Shown: positions 2,621 to 32,300, counted from the first letter of the stretch. The stretch is 64,000 nt of DNA from Thalia democratica (GCA_965202585.1 OZ241830.1:49290001-49354000), one strand, 5' to 3'. Made by a program: numbers and translations. Notes: generated from the letters alone by a model not told the origin.

Positions 2621-5600
2621 TATAAGGTTTGAGTGAAACTAACATGTTTTTACCTTTATAACAAAAAAGAAAACTATAAACATTGTTGGCAGTGGCACTC
2701 TTTGAAGCAAAAAATATTTTAATTTTTTTGGATATTGTTATAGATTTCATCAATTAAGTTTCACAAACCAACCATTCTTTTACTTTTAAATTACTGTTGA
2801 TTATCAAGTATGTTCCATGATAAACTTATTTTTTTAATTTATAACCTTTTAACAGAAATCACAACAGTATACATAATAATAAAATGTAACTCAAAGTTTG
2901 TATGAGATAAAAATCATGCATTTATGATAGAATATAAATAAACACAAAAGTTTTTGTTTTCACTCTATTCATATTTCAAGAGCATATAAAGTTTGTTGTT
3001 ATTTCTCTGTATGCATCTTTATAATTGCGAAAATTGATTATCTAAATAAATATGTAATATACTTAGTTTTTTTTAATTAAATACTATCGAGTTCTACATT
3101 TTAAATGTTTGTTTGAAGTCAATCTAAATCTGAAACTTCAATTGTTAACAGTAAAATTTTAAACGGAAGTAGTTTGATTAAATTAAAACATATATAATAT
3201 GTTATAGAAAAAAAAAAAGTCATTTTTAAGCAGTTTCAAAAGAAATGTAAAATATATATCTTACTGTGATCTTCTTGTTAAAGACGCACTATAATCTTAT
3301 TAAAACAATTTTTACCTAAAAACCAATATGCTTAAGGTAAATTTTATAATACTTAAATTTTTTGTTTTAAAAATAATAATTATAAAGATTAACAATAAGA
3401 AAACATTTGCATTTTAAAAGTTTTATTTAATTAAAGTTAAGAAGAATATTAATAAAAAAGAAGTGTATAAACGTACTTGAAAAATGAGAACATATATATA
3501 ATGATTTAAGGAGAATAAAGTATATTACAGATTAAGTATATAAAGTGAACCATTAATAGTAATGGGCTACGAGGAATAAATGATGATTAATATAACTTTT
3601 TTATAGTTTTAGAAAGTTGCCCATGAAAAAAATCTATAATGTCTATAATTTTCTAAAAAAACTTAAAATTAGCTACCAAAGTAGATATTTAAACAAGATC
3701 TAGTCAAACTTGGGAAATAAAAGTATCAACAATTTTTTTTTAATTTAAACTACTATTCAAAAAGTTAAATATCTTTACAGCTTAAATAAGTTTACTTAAA
3801 ATTATGTTTATTTTTAACTTTAAGTGACTGTAGATCGATTCATAACATTAGTTAACTTTAACATACTCGAGTAAACCATAAAGTATAAAATTGTATTTTT
3901 TGAGTTTCTGTCGAGGACTATGCTGTTTTGGTTAGTATGCAAAGTTATACTTTGTACTAAATTTTCATCTTTTGAATTAAGAAAGTTTTATCTAAAACCT
4001 TAACAAACTGAAACTTAACAGCAACAGCGTACTGCACTAATATTAAAAAACATTTTTTTACTTCAATATGTTTGTAAATATTTTTTTGTAAAACAGAACT
4101 ATGTACAGTAAAAGTTTGTAAAAATCTGTTTACCATATTAAAAACTAAAAAATTCTATTAATCAAAAAACAAATTCCTCATATTTTGATACTAGTAATAA
4201 TCACTTGACCACTACTCTGCTCAAGTAAAAGAAATTATAACAGTTTTAATTAAAATATATCGCTACAGCTTTTTATTTTATCGGACAGTAAAACACGGTA
4301 AAAAAGTATTTATAGTTGTATTGTTCACTGTGTAACAACTAACAAGCATGACATAAAAGTCTAAAATTAACTTTTAAAATTTAAATCTTTTACTTAAAAA
4401 TATTAGCAAAAGATTTAAAAAAATAAAATATCAAACTGTTTAAAATAAAAATGCAAAACTGAAAAGAAGAACTTATATATTTATCCCGCTAATGGCGACT
4501 TTTTGAACAATTATTACATTACATACTTTTAAATTTTAAGTCATTTTGTAGTTGACGAGTAGTTTCGAAAAGTAAAAGAAAAATGTTTTTTTGATTAAAA
4601 ATTTAGAACATTTGGAGAAGCTTGTTCAACTTTTATTACAGGTTGTAATTTTTTAACAATATAATTCTCATATTTAAAGAAACAGAGTGCATATAATTTT
4701 TTCAATGTGTCGTTTAAAAAAATGCTCACAAATTTGTGGAGCTTTATATGATATAATCATTAATCATATTTAATCAAGTGAGACTTTTATAAAAGAATCG
4801 TCCGATAACTCTATATTAGAATCTAATCTTTAGATCCAATATATACAAGGGGAATATTTGAATAATGCTGCATTCTTGAAATGCTGCATTGAAATGTTGT
4901 TTTGTTATTGTACATTTGGTTTGTATAATGTTATTATGTTCATTCTAGCATACAGAAAAAGTTTTGTTTCCAAAGAAGCTTATTACAAATGCAAAGTAAT
5001 TGCACTGTACAGTACAGTATATTAATTAAAAAAATTTTTAGTGTTTAATACCTATTTAAAATGTTTTTGAACAATCCTATAATAAAAGTAATTAAGGCCA
5101 TAAAGGTGGGGTCATGAAGTTATTCCACAAAAAATAAATTTGTTTATATAGATGGCTTAAATCTTAAACTATAAGTCAGTTTTATATTGTGTGTGATTGT
5201 GAGTTCACACTCACATATAGTTAATGCTGAGTTCACACTGGTAGCAGTGACCACACAATTAAGTTGTTGATGTATTTTTTTGTTTTAGCATCAGCAGTTA
5301 CTTGCTTGGGGATTTGAGCTTGATGATTTTACTACACTTTGTGGTTTTTAGTGTTGAAATTTTAACCTTTTTAGTGTTTGCCAAACTATGTGTCAAAAAG
5401 GTTAGTTTTCAATTAAGGGTTAGGATTAGTTTTTATTTTTATTTTGGTAAGTTAAAAATAAAATTTATGTTTAACCAAATAAAGTGTTTACCAAATGAAG
5501 TGTAACCAAGGGATAATTTTTGGTTTTCTACAAATTAATGGACGCACAAATTTAACTTGTTCAAATTTTTAATAAAATAAATTGAAATGAGCAATGTACC

Positions 5601-11310: not shown

Positions 11311-14300
11311 GTTAGTATATTTACATTATATAGTCATAAAAGTATACAAGTCTTTGTTAAATTTTTTTATCAAATTATGAAGTTATGTAATTTTATTGAG
11401 AAACTAAAAATTAATTAGTTTAAAATAAAATATTTTAAATATTTCTACAAAGAAAAATTTTGTAGATATTAATAAAGTGTTGATTCTAAAGTTAAAATTA
11501 TACAAATAGTTTATCTATCTAAAAAAGTTTGAAAAAAAAATCTTTTGATTTGTTTCTGAGTTATATAAAAAAGGATGACTTAGTATATTTTAAAGTTATT
11601 TAGGTCAGTTTTTTGTCACTCAGGATAGGTTTTTTTTTGACCTAAAGAGTGGCAACCTTGTACTTATGTATAGTTTGGATTTTTATTATTTTTTTGAACT
11701 ACAGTAACCTCTCGCATCTTTACGCACTTGTGACGTTACGCATTCTCGTTTAGTTACACACTTTAGAATTCTAAAAAATTCAAAAAATTGAATTTTTTTT
11801 TTCTAACATTGCCCAAATTAGGTTTATTGTATATTTTTTATTTAAATTATGTTTTATAAATGCTAACTCACCTTTCTATATCTTTAGACTTAGTATTTAG
11901 TACTTAAACAATTTTTATTAAACATTTTTCTTAAATTTTGTACGTTTTTGTTCAAAAGAAGAAATCCATTACACACCAAATGCATATTTTTGTAAAAGGC
12001 TATAGAAACAAATTTTAATATAAACACCACATCATTTCTTAGCTGTAATAAAATGCTTAATTATAAATTGAATTTGCTAAGTAGAACAGAATATAAATGT
12101 TAAGTATCAAATAAGTCACATAGAAATAAAGATAAAATCTACTTATTATTAAAGTTAGTAAAACTTTTATGCAAGTATTATTATTTTATGTAAATATAAA
12201 TCTTTTTTTTTGATATATGTACAGTTCTATCTTTTGTTTTCATATTTACAAATAAAGAAAATAAGTTGTTAAAATTGGGAAAGTTTCTGTCTGCTTTTAA
12301 CTAGTAGTAATATCAAAAAACAGCCATTATAATAAGTATATTTGTAACCTCTCGCATCTTTACAATCTCTCGTATCTTAACGAATTTTTTCTGTGGACAC
12401 ACTGTGCGTAAATAAGTGAGAGGTTACTGTATACTGTAAATGCTTACAAATTGATATAGTTTTTTTAATCTGCTTTCGAAGTTACAAAAGTGTATAAAAG
12501 AAATCTGAACATAAATGTTTAGCATTAAAAGAATGGGTCAATAAAAGCATGTTAAATAATTCATGATATTTAGCTTCCTTTTTTAATTCTTTTATATATT
12601 TTATATTGTACTGTTTTTAACTTATATGAATACTAGTACTTCTAAATCTATATATATATATATATATTTCGTGTATTACTGTCAACATTGTATAACAGTG
12701 GTGGCAGTTTTTTATAAGTTAAGGGCTAGATTAGAAATAGTTGTTTTATTACCTAATGTTTTTTTAGGTTTTTCTTGTGTGTATATTTATGTATTCGATG
12801 ACTTAGATAACAATTGTATATTGATTAATTGTTTTATGTAACTAATTTTGTATGTAATTATGGTATTGTTGTTATGTTTAAAATAATTAGCAGTTTTTCT
12901 TGAAATTTATTAAAAAAACCTTGTTTTATACTTGAAAGGTAGCTTAACTTTTCTATCTTTAATTTTTATCATTTTTATTTAATATAACTAAAATATCAGC
13001 ATATATTTTAGTTTGTTTAAATAACATAAACTTATTGTATAAGTATTTACCTAGTTTAACTATGTTTTGTATTACAGACTTTATCATTCTTGTAATTAGT
13101 TTGTGAATAAACTCAACCAAGAAAGATATATTTATTTATGATAAAGTCAAGCTGAATTGAATCAACAATGCCTGTGATTAAATGCCCTCTTGAGAGTTGC
13201 ACAAAAGAAACACCAGACGTCGATGCTTCTGTAGTTGCCTCTTTGCTTATCATTCACAACAATGTTCACATTAATGCAAATTCTTCAAAACCAAAGCCTC
13301 CAAAGATGGAACGTCCTCGAATAAGGACAGACTGCAATGAAGAGAGTTGGAACATATTTGTACAAAAGTGGACTATTTTTAAAGATAGCATAGAGATGAC
13401 AGATGTAGAAAAACGCCGTCAACTGTACCAGTGCTGTGAGGAAGAATTAGGGGATGCTATTCTGAAGGGACATGAAGATATAGTAAATTCAAGTGAGCAA
13501 GAGCTTTTAAGGATTATCAAACAGCTTGCAGTTATTCCTGTTTCAGTTGTTGTACAAGACTTTCTTAGTACAAGACAGGATTTGACTGAAAACACTAGAT
13601 CATTTGCTGCCTGTTTAAAGGAAAAAGCCAGTACATGCTCGTACACATGTAAATGCCTAAAGGATGGTTGCAATCAAATGATAGATTTTACAGACATAAT
13701 CCTGAAAGATGTCATGGTAACAGGTTTTGTGGATGAGGATATCCGTAAAGAAGTGCTAGGATGGGAAAATCTAGATGAAAGAAATGTCAATAAGAAAATT
13801 GGTTTTATTGAAGGAAAAGAGATGGCACGCGATGCAATGTGGAAACCTGCTGTTACAGCCTAAGTTTTCTCATACAAATCCTCAAAGAAAACCACACAAA
13901 AACCAAATGGTAAAATAACCTGTGACATATGTAATAAATCGACTGATAAATTTGTTTGGAGCAGTAAAAATATTAGGTATATTGAGTGTTCTGCCTGTAA
14001 ACAATGCTGGATAAAGTCCTGTAAAAAAGTTTATCAAAGTCACCAAAATTATGCCAATGAATCAAATGCACTTGTAGTTGGTGGTTTGTATACACCAAAT
14101 GTATTAAAATCCTTAAAGAAAACCACACAAAAACCAAGTGGTAAAACAACTTGTGGCATATGTAATAAATCAACTGATAAATTTGTTTGGAGCAGTAAAA
14201 ATATGAGGTATATTGAGTGTTTTGACTGCAAACAATGCTGGATAAAGTCCCGTAAAAAAGTTTTCAACATCACCAAAATTATGCTGATGAGTCAAATGCA

Positions 14301-17300
14301 CTTCTAGTTGGTGGATTGTATACACAAAACTTTGATAATTTTTGCAGCCAAGGTCGTAGGAAAAATATGTTCGAGCGTTGAAACGTCAAGAAGAAAAAGG
14401 AGGTACAGGGACAGAAAAATGTATTTCTACACACCGGATGGTGACAAAAACCGCAAAAATCCCAAAGTAATCCTCACCTACCTCAAAATTATAAGAAGTC
14501 ATTACCTTCCGTCAGAAAAAATGTTATGACTTACAATAACCCGCAAATCTAAAAAGTGTGGCGTGACATTTGGAATAAAAAGAAAGAATCTCTCAGTATT
14601 TGTTTTGTTAAGTCTCTGGAAAATGTAAGTGAGAACACAAAATCTTTGCCACCTTTGAATTGCAGTGGTCATGTCGTAATACTAAATCAAACAAGTAACT
14701 TTCCTAGCAAGTGGGGGAAAAGTGGAGTGGTGGTGGAAGTGAAGGACTGTCATCAATGTGTTGTCAAAGTTGATGGATCAGGTTGCTTAACTGTTCAAAA
14801 TCGTAAGTTTCTAAGAAGATTTACCCATCCTGTTTGCAAATCTCTAAGTAGTATCCCTTATCTGAGAAAAGCAAACATACCACTGTAAAAGTTTGTCTTT
14901 TCTAGTAAAGTTGAGAAAAAAGATGTCAAGAAAAACTTTGATGTTATGTGTTTCCAGAAGGAAGATTCTTTTTGAATAAGCATTGTGTAATTTCCCTCTG
15001 TACTAATGACTTTCTTCAAAATTGATGTTGAACCGGAATGGCTCGGATTAGCTTTGATCTATATTTTCTTGACTTATATTTTATACAGAAAAGCAAACAG
15101 ACCACCAAAGTTTACTTGCAAACAATAATGTGTCCGGGATGAATGTGTGAAATTATCGGATTATTTGCAGCCTTTCCGTGTAAGACTTTATGATGCTTTT
15201 CAAAAGCTTCGTGACACCAATGTTGCTGATATTCATTTATTGTCAAGTTGTAATGGTCACTGTAAATTAATGTTTTATGGTCTAACTAATGAATGAGTTT
15301 CAGTCTAATGGTGACGTCATAAAGTTTGTAGTTGACTTTGTCTAACAGCCATCTGTTCAAAGTAATCTTGGATTAGGACGCAGGGATTGACTTTCAAAAA
15401 TTCGAACTATTAGTTGGTATCGAGTATTTGGAAAATAAGTGTAGCAGTATTTCCTCAGTGTTTAATGCCATCAGTAATGCACATTCTACTTTGTTTGCAG
15501 TCGAAATTACAATAAAGATGTTTATCGGCAAATTAAGTGAAGTTTCAAGTTAATTAGATGAGTGGCGTGTGGTTTCGTTCTTCAAAGCTGAAAAGTTCAA
15601 ATCGGTGAAGCAATTAAGTTTTTGAATGCTTGTATTCAGCAAAGTGAAGAAAAGTAAAGATTAAGTCTCAAATTTTTGTTACAGTTTGTTTGTTTAAGTT
15701 GTAGTTTGTTTTAACAAATCATTTAATAGTGAACTAAGTTAATCGTAATTTTTCAAATGTTTTTGTCTTTTTGAGTTTAGTTTCGTTGAATTTTAGACCT
15801 GAGAAATGTGTTTAAGTTGTAACAAATTGTTTTAAAATAATTTTGTTTCGCTAGGTAAATTTATCATTTTATCTCCTTTGTAGATAAAATCTGGGGGGAG
15901 ATGTATAAGTATTTACCTAGTTTAACTATGTTTTGTATTACAGACTTTATCATTCTTGTAATTAGTTTGTGAATAAACTCAACCAAGAAAGATATATTTA
16001 TTTACTTATAATATTTTTTTCTATTTAATAATAAGTCATAATTTGTTCAGTATAAGTTAGTCATTGTTGAGTCATAAATTACAGATTAGTATAATTTAAA
16101 AAAGTAAATGAATAAGACTTTTTAACATTTAGTTATTATTAAAGTATCAATACTAAGGTGAATTGTCTTAATTTTTATAAAATAATGTCTAATTATTAAA
16201 TTAAAGGGAGACAAAGTACAAAAATTAACTTCAACTTTAAAATAGATTTTTTTTCTTAATTATAATATTTATCTTAACACAGTTTTTGTAAATCTAATAA
16301 GTTTAAGTTTTGTTGATACTATTTTTACATAAGTTTTGTTTAAACAAAAATCAACAGCGCAAAGAGATGGAGATGAAAAAAGATCTTATTTATTCTTAAG
16401 ACAAGAAATCCCAACAAGACTTGCAAACATGGTGAAGGTAAGTCTTTGCTTTTATTTACTGTAAAAGTTGAAGTAAAGTTTAGATTGTGTTTTTTAAACA
16501 AACTTTAGCTACCAAGCAATTTTTTTTTAGTTTATCTCTATTTATAAATTAACATTTAGTTAGCAATTGTTTTTGCTCTTTAAAAAGTAAAATCTCTTGA
16601 ATTTAAATGGAAGCTCAATAAATTTTTATATAAGTTGCCAACTAACCAGACAAAAGTTAACAAACAATTGTGGTAAAAATTTTTGCTAACATTCTATCTC
16701 TTCATACAGCGTTTTAGCAATTGTTTTTAAACTTTCTCTGAGTAATCTTTAACAGACTACATAAATGTTATTTGGAAAAACATATTAAATCTATTTTAAA
16801 CTAGTTTTTTATTTTCAAAAAAAAAGTGTATACTACATGTTTATTTTTTTTAGTTTTATTGTTTAAAATGTTAACAACAAGTTGTTTCTAATATAGAAAT
16901 GAATACTTTCTAAAAATTTCAAGTAAGTTGTTTTAAAACTATAAGAGTAGAAAGATTTTTGTTATTAAAAAAAAATCACAACAAAAAATTGCAATTAAAA
17001 GTTTCTTTTCATTAAGTATGTATATACAACTTGTAACAAAACTGATTATAATTCAAAAGTTAGTCAATTTTTTCAATTTCATAAAAAGTATGTTTTGTAA
17101 TGTTGTTACATGAAGATTAATTTTTTAACTTAACTTAAAGCCTTGTTATACTTATGCATTTTAACGTAAATTGAAAGTACATTTTTTTTAGCCAAATTGT
17201 GTTTGTTAAATTATTGGTAAAATTGTATTGAGTCAATATTTTACAAAATTAACTTGTCTTGCATACTTATACTTAAATATTTGTATCAGAAATGTTTATA

Positions 17301-20300
17301 AGTTAACTTTTAAAATCATCTGAAATTATTGTTTGCTTTTGAATAACTTAAAAATATTAGTTCAACAGTTTTTTTGAAATAAAGTTGTATAAAATAAAAT
17401 TTATTATAGAATTAACAGTTATAGCTTTATTGAACTTTTAAGGAAATGATAAGACTACCATCCTCATTATTGAAAATGCCATCTACAAAGTTAGTTACTT
17501 CATGGTATGAAACTTCTTTTGATGAAGTTATAAAGTTTCAGCGCACTAAACCTGATCATAGCACATTGATTAAGTTAGTAAATTATTGATTATTAAACAA
17601 AAATATATAAAATATAATAATTAAATACTAAATAAATATGTATCTACTAGGATGATTTATATTTACTTATAACTAACTATAAGTTATTTTACATAATCGC
17701 ATCTGACACGAATCCATTTGGATACATTTTATGAATGATAAAGCTGATTTAGCTGTAGAGAAACTGTTGACCCTTCACCTTCAAGTAAGTATTGTGTATA
17801 AGAAAAACATTATGTAAAGCATCCTGTATTTGATATCATTGTTATATTGAGATTCCTGCAAACACTTTAAATAGTTTGACTAATGCATGGAATGGGTTTC
17901 ATTCTGTACCACTTCAACCCAAAGATCATCATCTTACAACATTTCTTACTCCATGTGCAGGGTTGTTACTCGGTCAGGAAATCAGGAAAAGTCAGGAAAA
18001 ATTTAAAAAAAATACAAAAGTCAGGAAAAGTCAGGAAAAAATGGGGGGTTTTGAAAAAAAGTCAAGAAAAGTCAGGAAATTTGATAAAATTAAAAAAAAA
18101 AGTCAGATTTTTATCAGTTTAAATTTACAAAATTCTTTGTTTTCCGAAGCCTTTAAATGTTAAAAATTAATCAAAAGTCCTTTAAATTCAAAAAAAAAAA
18201 TTCCAACATTTTCCTAGAAATTTACAAAAATATTTAATTTTATTTCACATGCTATCACCTGGTATAAATTAGTAAAATATCCTTTGTAACACTGCAAAAA
18301 TTTTCTATTAAAATATTGAACAAGTACCCTACTTAAACAAGCAGATTTTGTAAGCTTTTTAGTATTGATGATTTGTAGCAAGGACACTTCCATAGTGAAA
18401 CTGTGATATATACACAAAAGTTTATCTAGCATAATTTTAGAATCAAAGTGTTTTTGTTTAAATAATTGAGTTCTTTATAACTAAGCAGTTAGTTTAGTAT
18501 TTTGTGTAACAAGTTAATGTGTATACTTTACCTCTTTATAATTTTTTCAAAGTTGTTAAAATTTATAAATTAATATATAAGAGAGGTATATGCCAAGATT
18601 AAGTTTACTTATTGTTTGTATTTTTTGTAGAGTAACTTAAGTTTTTAAACCAAATAAAAAGAGTATATTTATTTATTACAAATTTTATACTAAATGAAAA
18701 AAGGAAATATTTTATACAACAGATATATAGTTAACTTTTTTATGTCTTTTTTTTTTACAGTTACCTAAGTATATTCTTTTTTAATTGAATTTTAATTTAA
18801 GGATTTTATATTAAATAGTTTTGGTAGTATTTTATTAAACTAAGTGAACAATTTATATAAGTAAAACTGATTTAGAAAAGTCAGGAAAATTTTGGTAAAA
18901 AGTCAGTAAAAGTCAGGAAAATTTTCTCAGCTTGATCAGTGGCAACCATGCATGTGGTATCTACTACAAAATGGAACCACAAGGTTGTTTAGCTAGTAAG
19001 GATGCATATACGCGCGTGTATTATGTAACTATAATTAAAATTCATCTAGATTATTATTTCTCAAACTTTTTTTTTTAAAGCCCCTCCCCTTTAGAGAAAT
19101 AAAATAAACAAGGCCCCTTGGACAAGATTTCTCAAAAAACTTACCTTATATACACCTAAGAATGTCGTTTTAGTTTGCGCCTCCCATAAGGATCCTATTG
19201 CTGCCTCCGACTTTGACCGTATATATCTCTAAAATTATTTTGAATTATTATAATCTGTAAAAAGCAACTTGCAGCTTAGTAAAAACTATATAGAATAAGA
19301 TCGAATTTTGAAAAAATGGTTTTTACTATCCCCTGCACACATCCATTTGAACCAAAATTTAAAGGTTTCATTACTTTACCTCATAAAGAGTGTTATTGCT
19401 TAAAATAACCCACAGATTCTACTTTTTAACGTTATGCATGGAGTAAAAGGTTGAAGCTCTAAGGTCTTGTTATGTATATTTACCCAAAAATTGATTTAGC
19501 ACATTAAACCAATGCTACCATTCAATTGTGGTCATCAGGTTATGATACAAATAAAAAAAACATTTATTGATAAATTATGTTGAAAAACTTTTAATCTGTT
19601 GTCAAAGTTAATGAGACAGGTTGTTTAACAATGCAAAATCATAGTTTTTAACAAAAATTTAACTTTCTTCACTGCAAATCTCTAACCAGTACCTCTCATC
19701 TAATAAAAGCAAACATACCGTTGCAGAAATATGTTTTTTTTGTAATGAATAAAAAAGAGATTTCCAGGAAATTGTTGCTGATCCGTGCTCCCAGTAGATT
19801 GTTTAAGTATTTACCTAGCTTTCATTAAGTTTTGTATTACAGACTCTATCATTCTTGTAATTAGTTTGTGAATAAACTCAACCAAGAAATATATATATAT
19901 ATTTATGATAAAGTCTAGCTGAATTGAATCAACAATGCCTGTGATTAAATGCCCTATTGAGAGTTGCACATATGAAACCGACGTCGATGCTTCTGTAGCT
20001 GCCTCTTTGCTTATCATTTACAACAATGTTCACATTAATGCAAATTCTTCAAAACCAAAACCTCCAAAGATGGACGGTCCTCGAATAGGGAGAGACTGCA
20101 ATGAAGAGGGTTTAAACATATATGTGCAAAAGTGGACTATTTTTAAAGGCAGCTTGGAGATGACAGAGGTAGAAAAACCTCGTCAACTGTACCAAAGCTG
20201 TGAGGAAGATCTAGGCGATGCTATTCTGAAGGGACATGAAGATATAGTAAATTCAAGTGAGCAAGAGCTTTTAAGGATTATCAAACAGCTTGCAGTTATT

Positions 20301-23300
20301 CCTGTTTCAGTTGTTGTACAAGACTTTCTTAGTACAAGACAGGATTTGACTGAAAACACTAGATCATTTGCTGCCTGTTTAAAGGAAAAAGCCAGTACAT
20401 GCTCGTACACATGTAAATGCCCAAAGGATGGTTGCAATCAAATGATAGATTTTACAGACATAATCTTAAAAAATGTCATGGTGACTGGTCAAGCAGATGA
20501 AGTTATACCTAAAAAGGTGCTAGGATGGGAAAGTCTAGATGAGAAAATTGTCAATGAGACAATCGGTTTTATTGAAGGAAAAGAGATGGCATGTGATGCA
20601 ATGTCAAAACCCGCTGTTACGGCCTCAGTTTTCTCATACAAATCCTTAAAGAAAACTACACAAAAACCAAGTGGTAAAATAACTTGTAGCATATGTAATA
20701 AATCAACTAATAAATTTTTTTGGAGCAGTAAAAATATGAGGTATATTGAGTGTTCTGCTTGTAAACAATGCTGGATAAAGTCCTGTAAAAAAGTTTATCA
20801 AAGTCACCAAAATTATGCCGATGCGTCAAATGCACTTCTAGTTAGTGGATTGCATACACAAAACTTTGATAGCTTTTGTAGCCAAGGTCATAGGAAATAT
20901 ATGTTCGAGCGGAAAAACGTGAAGAATAAAAAGGAGGTACAGGGACAGAAAAAGTACTTCTACACACTGGATGGTGACAAAAACCGCACAAATCCCAAAG
21001 CAATAATCGCCTACCTCCAAATGAACTATTGATTCCAAAAATTCCCCTTGATACGATTGTTTGTGATTATTTTTATTTTAGAGGGTGGTATTATTTTGTA
21101 GCTGCAGACAGACTTACAGGTTGGACAGAACATAAAAGAATAAAATTAGGTACACATGAGTCTGGTTCAAAAGGACTATGTAAAGCTTTGCGTTGTATTT
21201 TTGTTACTTTTGGTGTTCCAGTTGAAATATCTTCAAATAAAGTTCGAGAGCTTTCAGTAAAAGTTACCAAGGATTTTCTAAAACAATGGGGAATACACCA
21301 TCGTATGTCATCTGCATATCATCTTATTTCGAACGGTAGAGCAGAACAAGCAGTAAAGGCCACTAAGCGATTGTTAATGGAAAGCGTTGGTCTAAATCAG
21401 GGTTTCCCAAACTTTTTTGCAAATGGCCCCCTTTAATAAAATTGAAAAGGCAATGGCCCCCTTCAACAAGATTACTCTACTATTAATACGATAAAAAACA
21501 CCAAAGACCTTTTTTTTTCTTCATCTGCAACTCAAGAATATCTAGTATAAATTTATAAACTACCATAAAATACACATAAGACCTTTTTTTTGCTCTTCAT
21601 CTCCAACTCAAGAATATCTAGTGTAAGTTTCAAGTTATGGCCTCATGAACCCCCTTTTGCTCCTTTACTGCTCATGGCCCCCCTCTTCCCCCTTTGCTGC
21701 TCGTTGCCCCCTGAGTATCTTTCATGGCCCCCTGGGGGCCACTTTGCCCACTTTGGGAAACCCTGGTCTAAATGGTGAACTAAATAACGACAGAATGGTA
21801 CAAGCTTTACTTTCGCAGAGAAATACGCCTGATCCAGGATGCAAACTATCCCCTGCACAGATCCTTTTGGGACGAAATTTAAAGAAGTCATTACCTTACG
21901 TCACAAAGAGTGTTATGACTTACAATAACCCGCAGATCTCAAAAATGTGGCGTGAAGTATGGAGTTAAAAGGAAGAATCTCTTAGTATTTGTTATGTTAA
22001 GTCTCTGGAAAATATAAGTGAGAACACAAAACTGTTGCCACTACTGAATTGCGGTGATCCTGTCGTAATACTAAATGAAACAGGTAAGTTTCCTAGCAAG
22101 CGGGGGAAAAGTGGCGTGGTGGTGGAAGTGAAGGACTGCCACCAATGTGTTGTCAAGGTTGATGGATCAGGTCGCTTAACTGTTCGAAATCGTAAGTTTC
22201 TGCGAAGATTTACCCCTCCTGTTAACAAATCTCTAAGTATCTGAGAAAAGCAAACATACCACTGTAGAAATTTGTCTTTTCTGGTAAAGTTGAAAAGAAA
22301 TATTTTAAGAAAAGTTTTGGTGTTCTGTACTCCCAAAAGGAAGATTCTATTTGAATAAGACTTTATCATAAACATATATATCTTTCTTTGTTGAGTTTAT
22401 TCAGAAACTAATTACAAGAATGATAAAGTCTGTAATACAAAACATAATGAAAGCTAGGTAAATACTTATACATAGGTGATAAATACCAAAGCTGGAGATA
22501 ACTATAGCAGTATTAGCAACGCTACCTGCCTTTCACCTGAAGACTCAAGTTATATTGGTGAAGACCAATCCTCTTTAAAGCAGAAGAATGTTATATTGTT
22601 TCGTTTGGTTCCATATATTAAACATTGGTTTTCTTAAAACTATTGTTTTAGCGATGGAGTTTACCAGAAGATGAGCTGTGTTGTTCTTGTCGTAAAAGTA
22701 CCAAAAGAAGATAAATGATGCCACAAGTGGTACCCATAGATTTATTAGTTAAGCTTTAGTTAAAATAGTAGTGTTGTTTGAAACTTTGTCGCAGTTTAAG
22801 CGTGTCTTTGCTTTGTAGTTAGTCCTGTTTTAAAAATTGGAAACACAATATTAAACTAAATAGATTATTGAATTTCAGTTTTTTTTTTGTGCTTTTTTAA
22901 TTGCGTTAGTTGATTTTCATATCTGAAATTTCTATTCAAGTCTACAATATTTTTTTGCTGACTTGATAAATCGTTTTATCTCTCTTGTAGATCAAATCTG
23001 TGGGAGATGTATAAGTAAAGACAATATTAGGGAATTTAAATATAAAATGTGTAAATAGTTAATTACTTAGTAGAACTTTGATTGACTTGATTCGAGTTTT
23101 ATGTTTGAAACATGAACTAAATTTATAAAAATTTAAGATTATGTAAAATTTTTAGTTTAAAAAGCAAATGTTAGGAACTTCATAAAAATATTATTTTTTT
23201 TTTTAAATTAAGTTTGTTTGTTAATTTACTTATTAGATATTTGTCTTTAATATATAAAAATGTTTTCAGCTATTGCTTTTCATCTAAATTTATAGATGCT

Positions 23301-26300: not shown

Positions 26301-29300
26301 GTAAAGGGAAGGGACACTGGCGTATGCATGCCTCCTAAAAAAATAAATAAAAAAAGAATGTAAAATCTTTATCCTTTAATAATTTATTGCTCTGCTTAAT
26401 TTGTTTTATTTTTAACCATGTTTATGAAGTATTTTGAAAGTTAAACAAATTTTTGATTTGAATACCAAATGTACAGATATGGTACGTAAATATCATTGTG
26501 TACCGGCTTTGATGAAAAACTTCATAAGGATTTTTTTAAAGTTTAAAAACTATTAACTAAAATTCAAAAAATGCTCACTGGTGTTTGTGAACCGTGGTAG
26601 TATAACAGCTATGAAAGATTTTTTTACAAGGAAAAATGCTACATTTTAAATACAACCCTCATGCTAAACCTATGGTTCAAAAATAAACAAACTTTCATAA
26701 AAAAGTAAAATATAACTAATAAAAAAAAAAATTTAATATGAAAAGTACTAATAATAAATAATAACGATGCTATTAAAGTTAAATGAAAAAAAAAAGAAGA
26801 ATTTTATTAGTTTTAACATAAAATAGTGATAAATAAATAGTGAATTCAATGTTAACTTCACTATGAAGTCAGCAGATACTGATGGCTCAGTATCTGCAAG
26901 ACCCGTTAACTTATTTTTTTGTCTTAAGCCCTTCTTAGTCTTAATCATTCTAATGGTATAGTAATCACTTAAATAGTAGTTTAAATTAAAAACAACCGGT
27001 TATAAGTTACACAGCACAGTTTAATAAACAATATTTAATAACAAATGTGATTTAAAAAATACGTATTAACTCAAGTAAAATTATACAAAAATTTGATATG
27101 GACCATGGTAGAGTGTGCTAAGTTTCCGCTTATTTTGTCTCCTAAGCCAAACCCATTCGCATTCGAAAATCCCTGGTTCATAGTATGATTTATTATTGTG
27201 GCGCTTAAATTGCCTACCGATTTTAGCCATCATATTCAAAAATACTTTAGTTTCTAGAGTGTTGGGTGTGGTAATAACGTCAGTACCCTCAATTTTGTCG
27301 AACATTACTCTCCCCGAGAGATTCTGGGCCGTCGCGATAGCATATTGAGCTGGGGTATAAGGTGAACCTTCAACGAAGGTATTGTTTAAAGCTGTCGTTA
27401 TCAGAGGCAAATGCAAAGCCCAATTTGTCTTATCAGATAACGCGCGAAGTGCAACATTGATAGTCTTATGTTGCCTCTCAATGAAACCGTTAGATTGAGG
27501 GCTGTATGGGGATACCAAACGATGATCTATTCCTAACTGCTCGAATGCTTCGGTTAACGCGGTATTAACAAACTCACGGCCGTTATCGGAAACAACTACT
27601 TGAGGGACCCCAAATGGACCTACCCAGCATTGAAAAAAAGCATTCCTGACAGTCAAAGCTTTCTTATCTGTGATCGGCATAGTTACAAGAAACCCTGTGG
27701 CTCGGTCTTTGGCAGTTAAAATATACTTATTATTACAAGATGACTCATTTAAAGGACCGACAAGATCTATGTGAACGAACTGGAATCGTTCCGTATTGTC
27801 TGGAAAAAAACCAATTTTTTGACGATTATATCTTGTTACTTTGGTCGCTTGACATACCACACAGCTTTTGACCCAATGAGTCACATCTTTTATCAATGTA
27901 GGCCAGTAATAGTCTTTTGCAATAGACTCGATTGTTTTATCAATACCCAGGTGCAACCTATCATGGGCCACATTAAATGCTGTTAGGCGCATAGATTCGG
28001 GCAGAATGATGCGCTTATTATTTTCGTCTACCACTACCGCTAAATTTTCTGGTTGTAAATATTCGACCGTTTTCTTCATATTACGTGCGGTATCTACTAG
28101 CCCCGGTTCATTACATTGCAAGACCGCAATAACTTCCCTATTTATCATATTAAAGCTAGTCGTATTTTCCCCGATCACTTCATTTAAATCACCGTAATCA
28201 TCTACCTAAAATTTCCTCTTCATCGTCTAAATCACCGTAATCAGACTCGCTGTCTTCAGCCTCTGACTCAGACGTATAAACAAAGTCAGAATCCTGGTTA
28301 TACGCACGAATATGCATTGCCGACTGTGGGGGTCGGCTTAAACTATCTGCTACTACATTATCATGGCCATCTATATGCCTTACTATTGGATTAAATTCCT
28401 TGATTGCGCATATCCAACGTTGTTCCGCTGGAGATTGATTACCCATTTCGTTTTTAATGGCCCTTTCTACTGATTTACTATCAGTACGTATAATTAAGGA
28501 TCTCCCCAATATTCTGCTTTGAAAGTGCTTAAGAGACAAATACACCCCGCGAAGTTCCTTATAAAAAGTAGAACGTACTTGCTTAAATGGAGGGAGCTTC
28601 TTTGAAAAAAACGCAAGCGGTTGCATTCCCCCATTTCTCCCTTCTTGTTCCAGAACTGCGCCAACATGGCTGTCAGAAGCGTCCGTGAAGAGAACTAGGG
28701 GTTTTGTGTGGTCTTCATAGCTTATTGTTGCTGCTTTAACTAACAGAGCTATTGTGTCATGATAAGCTTTGATTTGACCATCAGTAAGTTTAATAATTGC
28801 CCTATTGCTTGCCTTAAATCCCCCCGAAATTTCATTAAGCGGTGCCATTACTTCGGCCAAGTTTGGTATTAATCGATGATTGTAATTAATCATACCAATT
28901 ACCCTTTTTAACTCTTTGCGCGTGTTTGGTAAGGGTAATTTTTTTATAGCTTCTACCTTAGATTCCATAACATCAACCCCGTCAACACCTACTGTATGAC
29001 CTAAAAAATCTACCTTAGTTCTAGCAAAAGAAAATTTTGCTTTATTTAAAAATAAACCGTTTGTCGATAATGTTTTTAAAACCTGTTTTAAATGTGATAT
29101 GTGACTGTCCGCGGAATCTGAAAACACAAGAATATCATCTAAATCAGGGTTTCCCAAAGTGGGCCAAGTGGCCCCCTAGGGGGCCATGACAGATACTCAG
29201 GGGGCCATGAGCAGCAAAGGGGGAAGAGGGGGGCCATAGCAGTAAAGGAGCCACAGGGGGGCCATAAGGCCATAACTTGAAACTTACACTAGATATTCTT

Positions 29301-32300
29301 GAGTTGCAGATGAAGAGCAAAAAAAAAAAGGTCTTATGTGTATTTTATGGTAGTTTAGAAACTTACACTCGATATTCTTGAGTTGCAGATGAAGAGCAAA
29401 AAAAAAGGTCTTATGTGTATTTTATGGTAGTTTAACTCACACTAGATATTCTTGAGTTGCAGATATGAGCAAAAAAAAAGTAATATGTGTATTTTATGGT
29501 AGTTTAGAAACTTACACTAGATATTCTTGAGTTGCAGATGAAGAGAAAAAAAAAAAAAAAGAAAAAAAAAAGGTTATATGTGTATAATGTTATATGTAGT
29601 TTATGAGTTACCTATATATTGAAGGGGGCCATTGCTTTTTCAAACTCTTTAAAGGGGGCCATTTGCAAAAGAGTTTGGGAAACCCTGATCTAAATATACA
29701 AAAGTGAAAGCCCCTCAAGAGGACAAGATACTGTCCATAAACTGCTGAAAACGTGTTGGCGCATTCCGCAACCCGAAAGAAGTCACCTTAGGGACGAATA
29801 CCCCGGAATTAGTTATGATAGCAGCATATTTTCGTGAGTTTGGATGAAGAGGTAAGCTATAGTAAGCTTCTTTAAGATCTAACGTGCTGAAAAATACGGG
29901 TACCTCCCGGAATTCTTTCCGTGAGCGTATCTATGCGCGGTAGCGGGTATGAAAATAGGCGTGTGTGGGCATTCAAAACTGTATAATCAACACAAATACG
30001 CAAATCACCATCTTTTTTGGGCACTACCGTGATTGGTGATGCACACATGTTGGCATCCCCCTTTACAACAGCATCTCTCGCAATTAGGTCTGAATAATTT
30101 TTATCTACCTTTTGTTGACAAGTTAAATTACATCTTCGCGCCTTAATCGTTCGCGGTTTATAATTGTCAACTATAATTTATAGAAAGTGGTTGTGTTTTC
30201 TTGGAGCAGTATAGTCAGGAGTTTTTGTAAGCTCAGGGTAATTCAACAGTAGTGTTTCACACTTGGTCTCTAACGTAGTTATGTTATTACTATCCCTAAC
30301 TTCCCCCGTATTAATTGACACAACTACCGACGCAGGCAAATCAGCGGCCCTAAACAGTTTAGTCGTTTTGTTAGACAATTGATGCGTCAATTCTAACGTG
30401 AAAGGGCATATTATCAGTTTGTTTGACATTAAAATGTCCATACCTAAAATGCCATAACTCCTATACTCTTGAGTAACCCAAAAATTATGTTTAATGGTTT
30501 TTAAATTACCTAGCTTAAGGTCAACGCAAGCACTCCCTATGAGGTGGATTTCATTGTCGCCAATACCCTTTATAGTTCTACTGACGGCTTAAAGTAGTGG
30601 TTTATGCCATTTGTTAGATTCTTAGGCAATATAGAAACTTCACATCCAGAGTCAATTAAGAAAAGAACGTTTGTAACATTGTCCTTTGCAAATAATAGAC
30701 TTTGAGGCAAAGTTTTCGGATTTATAGACGATTTATTTGAAATAGCAAACGACCAATTAGTTTTTACAGTTGGTTTTGTCGTGATATCATTACGCAATTG
30801 AGAGTGAGAGTTTGTTTCAGGTGATGGCTTTTTAGGCTGCCATGGTTTGGCAGAGGGACGAATTGGTACGGCTTCTACAGGCTTATTAAGAGGAACTCTG
30901 TTCCCATCCTCATGTCCTCTCATTGTTTTGAAGATGGGAAATCGTTTTTTTGATCGTGTTGTTGCCGTAACGGGGACATAGGGCAAGTTGCAACTGCAGC
31001 ACAATAGTCTGCCCTATCTCCAAACTTTGCATGTTTGTGACAAAGCGCGTTCTGTTCGTAATTCGTGCGCTTGTTATACCCTTCCCCTAAATACCCCTGA
31101 CTACGAGTGTGTTCATAGCTGCGGAAATGTTCCTTTTTTTGTGGGATGTTCTCATGCCATTTTTGTTTGTAAGAGTATCTCTTATTGTGCTTGAATCGCT
31201 GAGGTTCGTATGAAAAGTTTTTAGCATTTTCAAAGACCCTCTGTTGTTCAATATCGCATATAAACTCCGTGCGCCTAATAAACTCATTATATTCGAGCCC
31301 AAAACATTCCTTAATTTTGTTTTTTAAATTATTAGGAGCATGTCTGTGCATAAAGTATTTAATTCTGTCTTCCTCTTTAGACTTTGCCCATTGCTTAGCT
31401 GCCAAAAACAAGTCCTGGAATTGAACTGGCTCTGGCCATGATGGGCTTGCACCTAATATACGAGGCAATTTGTTACCTTTGCCTTGTAAAAAGTTAACAA
31501 GACTGTTAAACGTTCTGTCTTCGTCATGTGTTTCAACGAAGTCAATTATATCTGAACGGGGCCAAATTCTCTGGAGAATTTCAAACTTCTCCATTTCAGA
31601 TGTTATACCATAAGCCGTACACCGGTCTGCAAAAAAACGTAACTCCACAGCCGGATCGCGTACGGCATCAATTTTTTGAAAAAGCTTACAATTTTCAAGA
31701 GTTTTTTTCTTGAAACTTATTTGTGTTGACATTTCGCCTAAAGCGTGCGAGGTGTGATTGTTAAGGGTGAGGCCGCTGTCATTTATGGTCTTATTTGTAT
31801 CTAATCTCCTATAAATTGCTTTTAGTTCATTTTTTAGTTTATTTTTTTCTCTAAAACCTTAGCTTGCTCTAATAAGTGAGCTAAATCCTCAACGTCTAAG
31901 TCAACTTCATCTAAAGCATTAAAATCTACAATTTCATTATTTTCCCTAGTCTGCGCGCTTACTTTTGTATCATGAGCGCTGTTTATGGTCGCTTGAATAT
32001 TGCTGGGAGATTGTGAGTTCGATATCAAGTCAGAGTCGCCATTGAAGTCAGCAGATACTGATGGCTCAGTATCTGCAAGACCCGTTAACTTATTTTTTTG
32101 TCTTAAGCCCTTCTTAGTCTTAATCATTCTAATGGTATAGTAATCACTTAAATAGTAGTTTAAATTAAAAACAACCGGTTATAAGTTACACAGCACAGTT
32201 TAATAAACAATATTTAATAACAAATGTGATTTAAAAAATACGTATTAACTCAAGTAAAATTATACAAAAATTTGATAAAGCTAAAGAATAATTCAATAAT

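Follow-up and report, generated by a model that had tools for sequence, protein, structure and literature searches.

In a stretch of 64,000 nucleotides from Thalia democratica (GCA_965202585.1, OZ241830.1:49290001-49354000; hereafter the window), a long terminal repeat (LTR) retrotransposon, here called element 1 of family A, carries directly after its 5' LTR a sequence complementary to a segment of that same LTR, in the place where a site for a transfer RNA (tRNA) primer is usually found; the same arrangement recurs in a whole clade of animal Gypsy elements, which very likely prime the synthesis of their minus strand with their own RNA, in the manner of Tf1, and not with a tRNA. The mechanism is a known one; what is new is probably the lineage in which it is found, the breadth of that lineage and its probable independent origin.

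In element 1 the primer-binding site (PBS), TGATAAAGTC (13139-13148), is the exact reverse complement of GACTTTATCA (13077-13086) within the same LTR. This had been claimed in an earlier note on this DNA, and the coordinates of both arms hold, as does the lack of a TGG start; TATAAG and AATAAA are likewise read where the note had placed them, at 13038 and 13106. The duplex with the complementary 11-mer of which it speaks comes to 10 bp in element 1, where the 11th base of the PBS (13149) is an A facing A13076. The sequence TGATAAAGTC occurs seven times in the window, against 0.19 occurrences expected, and no tRNA genes were found in the window. Element 1 is a complete and very young LTR element, with identical LTRs, a target-site duplication of 5 bp and a polypurine tract (PPT). 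It is a non-autonomous derivative, about 3 kb long, of an autonomous Ty3/Gypsy-type element of the family B type (see below), retaining a gag-like frame, a piece of the pol C-terminus and the 785-bp segment that is standard for family A. Candidate copies of LTR plus PBS, 97-100% identical, number more than 1,100 in the genome of 801 Mb.

The autonomous partners were located by searching the genome with the reverse transcriptase (RT) fragment of the window; uninterrupted frames of up to about 1,595 amino acids (aa) are present in many of the matching elements, and two families, B and C, were read, the autonomous element of family B (e.g., L043) encoding gag-pol in one frame of about 1,590 aa between LTRs of about 104 bp. 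The RT-RNase H region is about 60% identical to that of a very large set of proteins, whose named sources include the cnidarian Nematostella vectensis and the eel Synaphobranchus kaupii; the DNA of such relatives was fetched and their LTRs were delimited by self-comparison, so that 11 families could be compared, from this genome, from marine metagenome contigs, from N. vectensis and from S. kaupii (see Table 1). In all 11 the PBS lies at offset 0 after the LTR and starts with TGA or TGT, never with TGG, and the LTR segment ends 41-55 nt upstream of the LTR end; a YAG (CA+1G-like) motif stands at or just 5' of the segment in all families read, and AATAAA, ATTAAA or AATAAG follows the segment at 5-19 nt in 10 of the 11 entries. 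The relatives read also share the combination of LTR, PPT and 5-bp duplications, with a related G-run upstream of the 3' LTR. An internal control is provided by a second, unrelated LTR element of the window, where an ordinary PBS of the canonical tRNA type, TGGCGACTCTGAC, directly follows the 5' LTR.

Table 1. Proposed primer segments in the LTR and sequences following the LTR, in the families and distant relatives read (identities refer to the RT-RNase H region).
Family or source	Element	LTR	LTR segment	Sequence after LTR	Remarks
Family A	element 1	103 bp	GACTTTATCA	TGATAAAGTC	
Family B	L043	104 bp	AGATTTTATCA	TGATAAAATCT	LTR about 91% identical to that of family A
Family C	L046	114 bp	AGATTTTACA	TGTAAAATCT	
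Nematostella	L069		GACTTCCTCA	TGAGGAAGTC	
Eel	L070		GGCTCTTTCA	TGAAAGAGCC	
	L071		AGAAATCCTCA	TGAGGATTTCT	
	L073		AGCACAAACA	TGTTTGTGCT	
	L074		GTCTTCTTCA	TGAAGAAGAC	
	L075		AACGATTTCGTCA	TGACGAAATCGTT	
	L068		GTTTAATCA	TGATTAAAC	
Distant relative	L076		AGCTTTGCAACA	TGCTGCAAAGCT	43% identity to family B; 11/12 paired, 9 contiguous; self-primer type
Distant relative	L077			TGGCGCGACAG	37-39% identity to family B; no complement to own LTR; ordinary tRNA site
Distant relative	L078			TGGCGCGGTCGG	36-38% identity to family B; no complement to own LTR; ordinary tRNA site

The pairing of the two arms is far beyond chance. Perfect complementarity extends over 9-13 nt at offset 0 in each of the 11 families; Watson-Crick pairs fill 109 of the 110 primer-PBS cells, with compensatory double changes at 8 of the 10 positions, while the segment of one family set against the PBS of another gives a mean of 5.8 pairs out of 10. 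Family B already differs from family A by C to T in the LTR and, to match, by G to A in the PBS. The 10-mer needed for pairing appears, depending on the family, in 1 to 199 of 200,000 shuffled LTRs (52 for family A). The RNAalifold consensus of eight families consists of the primer-PBS helix alone, with 11 pairs, none of them broken; 100% of the cells of the alignment pair, against 78% in shuffles, and sliding the partner by 1-3 columns lowers the pairing to 35-48%. Compensatory changes among relatives, which the earlier note had named as a check, were thus found in 8 of the 11 pairs of this helix, and none of 500 shuffles reaches the observed value. In single-sequence predictions each of the 11 RNAs has the duplex in its minimum-free-energy fold (z-scores -2.3 to -5.7), with constant geometry, and beside it stand hairpins of the poly(A) signal and of U5 (GAGGAG...UUCUUC), neither of which the consensus fold retains.

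By analogy with Tf1, elements of this clade would begin their minus-strand DNA with their own RNA instead of a tRNA. The transcript would start with the LTR segment (A)GACUUUAUCA or immediately upstream of it, at the YAG motif; its 5' segment is predicted to fold back, over an R-U5 loop of 41-55 nt, onto the PBS that abuts the last base of the LTR; the RNase H of the element would then cleave behind the conserved CA that closes the segment on its 3' side, and the freed 3' OH would be extended, the last LTR base being presumably the first to be copied. The sequence itself offers a single hint of cleavage, a conserved CA with a following U where the cut is proposed. Plus-strand strong-stop DNA, by copying the primer, would rewrite the PBS from the LTR segment in each cycle; a PBS so rewritten from an LTR-derived primer would allow each family to keep its perfect match while the sequence drifts, and PBS variants would be expected to track LTR variants, as is seen between families A and B.

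Table 2. Features of the window (positions counted from its first nucleotide).
Feature	Position	Strand	Remarks
Target-site duplication CTTAT, left copy	13031-13035	+	read from sequence; right copy 16005-16009
5' LTR of element 1, family A, 103 bp, TG...TA	13036-13138	+	100% identical to 15902-16004
TATAAG, possible TATA box	13038-13043	+	33-38 nt upstream of proposed transcript start; putative function
CAG, initiator-like YAG motif	13075-13077	+	putative start at A13076
Proposed self-primer (A)GACTTTATCA	13076-13086	+	13077-13086 pair with PBS
AATAAA polyadenylation signal	13106-13111	+	19 nt downstream of primer segment
PBS TGATAAAGTC(A)	13139-13149	+	abuts LTR; no TGG start
Gag-like open reading frame of non-autonomous element, 231 aa	13168-13863	+	87% DNA identity to gag end of autonomous L043
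Remnant of pol C-terminal (integrase) region	14485-14942	+	78% match to L043 element positions 4135-4579
Family-A-specific internal segment, 785 bp	14981-15765	+	at least 405 candidate genome copies, 91-96% identity, fixed distance from LTRs
PPT GGGGGGAGA	15893-15901	+	immediately 5' of 3' LTR
3' LTR of element 1	15902-16004	+	primer segment at 15942-15952
5' LTR of element 2	19800-19905	+	primer segment AGACTCTATCA at 19841-19851
PBS of element 2, TGATAAAGTCT	19906-19916	+	one mismatch to LTR segment
Inverted LTR (22472 to 22369) and PBS (22368 to 22358)	22358-22472	-	inserted in pol C-terminal remnant of element 2
3' LTR of element 2, cut off after 10 nt	23008-23017	+	PPT at 22997-23007 before; unrelated sequence after
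Second, unrelated LTR element	26864-32277	-	identical 235-bp LTRs 26864-27098 and 32043-32277; gag, RT/RNase H and integrase frames

Several points weigh against priming by the element's own RNA. TATAAG lies 33-38 nt upstream of the proposed start, somewhat far for a metazoan TATA box. Evidence from RNA consists of Logan contigs of marine metatranscriptomes: one contig, of 691 nt, begins at 13077, another begins at 13061, and in several the LTR is preceded by genomic flank, so that read-through transcripts or DNA are present in the libraries; no conclusion on the transcript start was drawn from them, and the contig beginning at 13077 is not counted as support. The 11th position is mismatched in the commonest subfamily of family A; among 30 copies read, the PBS is TGATAAAGTCA in most and ends in GTCT in three. 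Either the primer is of 10 nt in that subfamily or the rewriting of the PBS sometimes fails, and the unmatched 11th base suggests a 10-nt primer beginning at G13077. Finally, for family A taken alone a match to an internal tRNA fragment is conceivable; an Rfam search of the genome for tRNAs yielded only 63 candidates, almost all of them one repeated unit, and the tRNA hypothesis was rejected on the covariation rather than on a comparison of the PBS with all tRNAs.

A rival reading is that a fragment of a tRNA pairs with the PBS, as in the half-tRNA priming of copia, and that the match to the LTR is incidental. The sequence CAGACTTT in the family-A LTR resembles the anticodon stem-loop of tRNA-Lys(UUU), but the likeness breaks off at 8 nt, and neither families B and C nor any of the other species retain it. 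For Ty1/copia lineages, half-tRNA primers are on record (PMC6317226). Ten distinct PBS sequences each match their own LTR, however, and because a conserved tRNA cannot explain this, we regard such priming as very improbable. Still less credence is due to chance, or to a by-product of low-complexity, AT-rich sequence: the LTR is indeed short and AT-rich, but shuffles give only 5e-6 to 1e-3 per family, over at least nine independent families that include GC-richer ones, position and geometry are conserved, and the explanation is effectively refuted by the shuffles, by RNAalifold and by the slid controls.

A different role for the same helix deserves somewhat more attention, even if it is improbable as a full account: the pairing of LTR and PBS might be a conserved RNA structure that hides the 5' poly(A) signal or serves packaging or dimerisation, while some other molecule acts as primer. 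Only at the 5' end, with its PBS, can the helix form, and in every family the helix encloses a signal of the AATAAA type, so that suppression of 5' polyadenylation would fit and could coexist with priming. One arm, however, occupies the very place at which minus-strand synthesis has to start (offset 0 in each of the 11 families); no alternative PBS candidate and no TGG motif was seen; and the PBS differs from family to family, tracking the LTR, whereas a host primer would keep it constant. Priming by the RNA of the element itself is thus preferred.

As to the type of element, the domain content points to a Ty3/Gypsy (Metaviridae) LTR retrotransposon without chromodomain. Pfam recognises RVT_1, RT_RNaseH, Integrase_H2C2 and rve on pol, in Gypsy order, and no protease or gag family; the best match among solved structures is the RT of Ty3 (E = 9e-30). 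No Chromo match was obtained in full-length pol, nor in the last ~320 aa of three elements at E<=10, and the domain is absent from the precomputed Pfam lists of 120 relatives. A predicted model of RT-RNase H (pLDDT 74) was compared by Foldseek with Swiss-Prot structures, the identities being 20-21% for Tf2, 23% for Ty3, 23-24% for 17.6, 297, gypsy and opus, and 13-15% for the sushi-derived RTL1; the modelled domain thus appears to have no special closeness to Tf1/sushi, which points away from membership of that group, as do the tRNA primer sites of the nearest relatives outside the clade (36-39% identity), though this is not a phylogeny. The view of the earlier note that the RT is not chromovirus-like is in line with these results, and so is its proposal of a Gypsy lineage with tRNA-free priming, except that hosts include an eel and the lineage is not one of invertebrates only. 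The RT of the clade is marked by the motifs VTDAWNG(Y/F)HSVPL and CVDD; the latter, at the RT active site (about aa 710 of the L043 polyprotein), is found clade-wide in place of the usual YxDD, and tRNA-primed relatives have VVDD, VMDD or IVDD there.

The DNA of three distant relatives from an exhaustive search (L076, L077 and L078) was read. A maximum-likelihood tree, built from relatives without named references such as Tf1 or sushi-ichi, unites all verified self-primers and L076 in one clade (support 98/100, stem length 1.46), and the tRNA-primed L077 and L078 lie outside it; the root is arbitrary, and the boundary is sampled by these three elements. In the host genome, a search for tRNA-primed close relatives gave none nearer than families B and C. 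The balance of the evidence leans, if only by a little, towards self-priming having arisen independently of Tf1/sushi in an ancient, chromodomain-less and so far unrecognised clade of animal Gypsy elements, present in Cnidaria, in this marine invertebrate and in a teleost, with tRNA-primed sisters; given the arbitrary root and the three boundary elements, an independent origin is likely but short of proof.

To our knowledge, self-priming has been demonstrated experimentally only for Tf1 of fission yeast; elsewhere it is predicted, and it is regarded as a hallmark of the Tf1/sushi chromoviruses. It has been described as common in that group (PMC10085805, PMC4600332), and in Tf1 and Tf2 of Schizosaccharomyces pombe, as in Tj1, Tosmo, Maggy, Skippy and sushi-ichi, the PBS after the LTR complements about 11 nt proposed as the start of the element's own mRNA, as it does here; shared as well are the lack of a tRNA site, additional predicted R-U5 hairpins and an LTR end that is mostly CA (PMC10085805, PMC4600332). 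Unlike that group, the present clade has no chromodomain, an RT-RNase H no nearer to Tf2 than to Ty3 or the Drosophila elements, the RT motifs given above, LTRs of down to ~87-104 bp with a loop of only 41-55 nt, and animal hosts, from cnidarians to a teleost; the "pretzel" of three duplexes of Tf1 is not clearly recovered in its folds. Self-priming has also been predicted for the plant chromovirus Tcn1 and for the Ty1/copia TAR elements Houba and Osr-1, the basis being a region of 10 bp or more in the 5' LTR whose complement lies 0-5 bp beyond the LTR (PMC6317226); complementarity of this kind is found in the present clade too, which belongs to a different superfamily or lineage and to hosts of a different kingdom. 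Self-priming has therefore arisen or persisted in more than one lineage, and the present case is not the first outside Tf1/sushi.

The tRNA-primed relatives L077 and L078 (proteins P0220 and P0249) resemble the clade in their undivided gag-pol frame, in their Pfam domains and in an xVDD active site, and are 36-39% identical to family B in RT-RNase H; unlike it, they have canonical TGGCGCG... primer sites, with no complement to their own LTR. The bivalve Steamer-like elements of the Mag lineage are also Gypsy elements of marine invertebrates, with short LTRs and gag and pol in one frame; here, too, the primer differs, as a tRNA-Asn site is reported for MchSLE1 (PMC11046912). In the literature searched, which left subscription papers and Repbase notes outside its scope, no link was found between self-priming and non-chromoviral Gypsy elements of cnidarians, molluscs or fish. 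If the proposal is true, a second widespread animal lineage, with tRNA-primed nearest relatives, would mean that tRNA-free priming evolves repeatedly; the compensatory pairs of primer and PBS would form a natural series for studying the choice of cut site by RNase H; and self-priming would explain why PBS finders based on tRNAs leave such elements of marine invertebrates and fish without a primer site. As family A is both young (identical LTRs) and abundant (>1,100 candidate copies), it is a practical one for mapping the 5' end of the RNA and the cDNA intermediates.

Other copies in the window belong to the same group. In element 2 the PBS TGATAAAGTCT (19906-19916) faces a once-mutated LTR segment, AGACTCTATCA (19841-19851), with one mismatch, as the earlier note had it at the same coordinates. 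The inverted copy, also listed there, does show perfect complementarity over 11 nt (PBS 22368 to 22358 against 22431 to 22421), but it is an insertion within element 2 and no separate element. The insertion (22343-22486, core 22358-22472) comprises LTR, PBS and about 15 nt of a family-C-like leader, and its junction recurs at three to four or more loci (G000:C2:26569061, C9:6310988, C9:29644747), so that a subfamily evidently transposes with an inverted 5' end; in RNA of that subfamily, a long stretch would be complementary to the 5' end of the same molecule. Element 1 has the same left junction (14980), with a different sequence beyond. An origin of the inverted LTR and PBS as a fossil of plus-strand strong-stop DNA was considered and rejected, because the insertion also includes ~15 nt of leader at one end and ~14 nt at the other, and because several copies have inherited the junction. 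Between elements 1 and 2 (16005-19799) lies a decayed related element, with collinear pieces at 17736-17955 (RT), 18956-19035, 19325-19475 and 19593-19739; the adjacent RT fragment of the earlier note (at 17882) is part of this decayed relative, whose remains stop right at the 5' LTR of element 2, at about the same pol position as the inverted-LTR insertion in element 2.

In family B the PBS 11-mer TGATAAAATCT is repeated directly 5' of the PPT (L043 6838-6848), where family A has GATAAAATCT (15883-15892); a role of this copy as a second functional site is unsupported, GATAAAATCTGGG being kept in L068 despite a different PBS and being absent in other families. In the second, unrelated LTR element, a unit of 75-85 bp that ends in an A-run occurs four times in tandem between the RT and gag frames (29243-29555). 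Elsewhere in the genome (G000:C6:22746503-24124559), about 60 identical weak matches to the tRNA model, mostly ~16,030 bp apart over 1.4 Mb and with a strand flip near 23.33 Mb, may mark a ~16-kb unit repeated in a large tandem array, perhaps mitochondrion-derived DNA or an assembly artefact.

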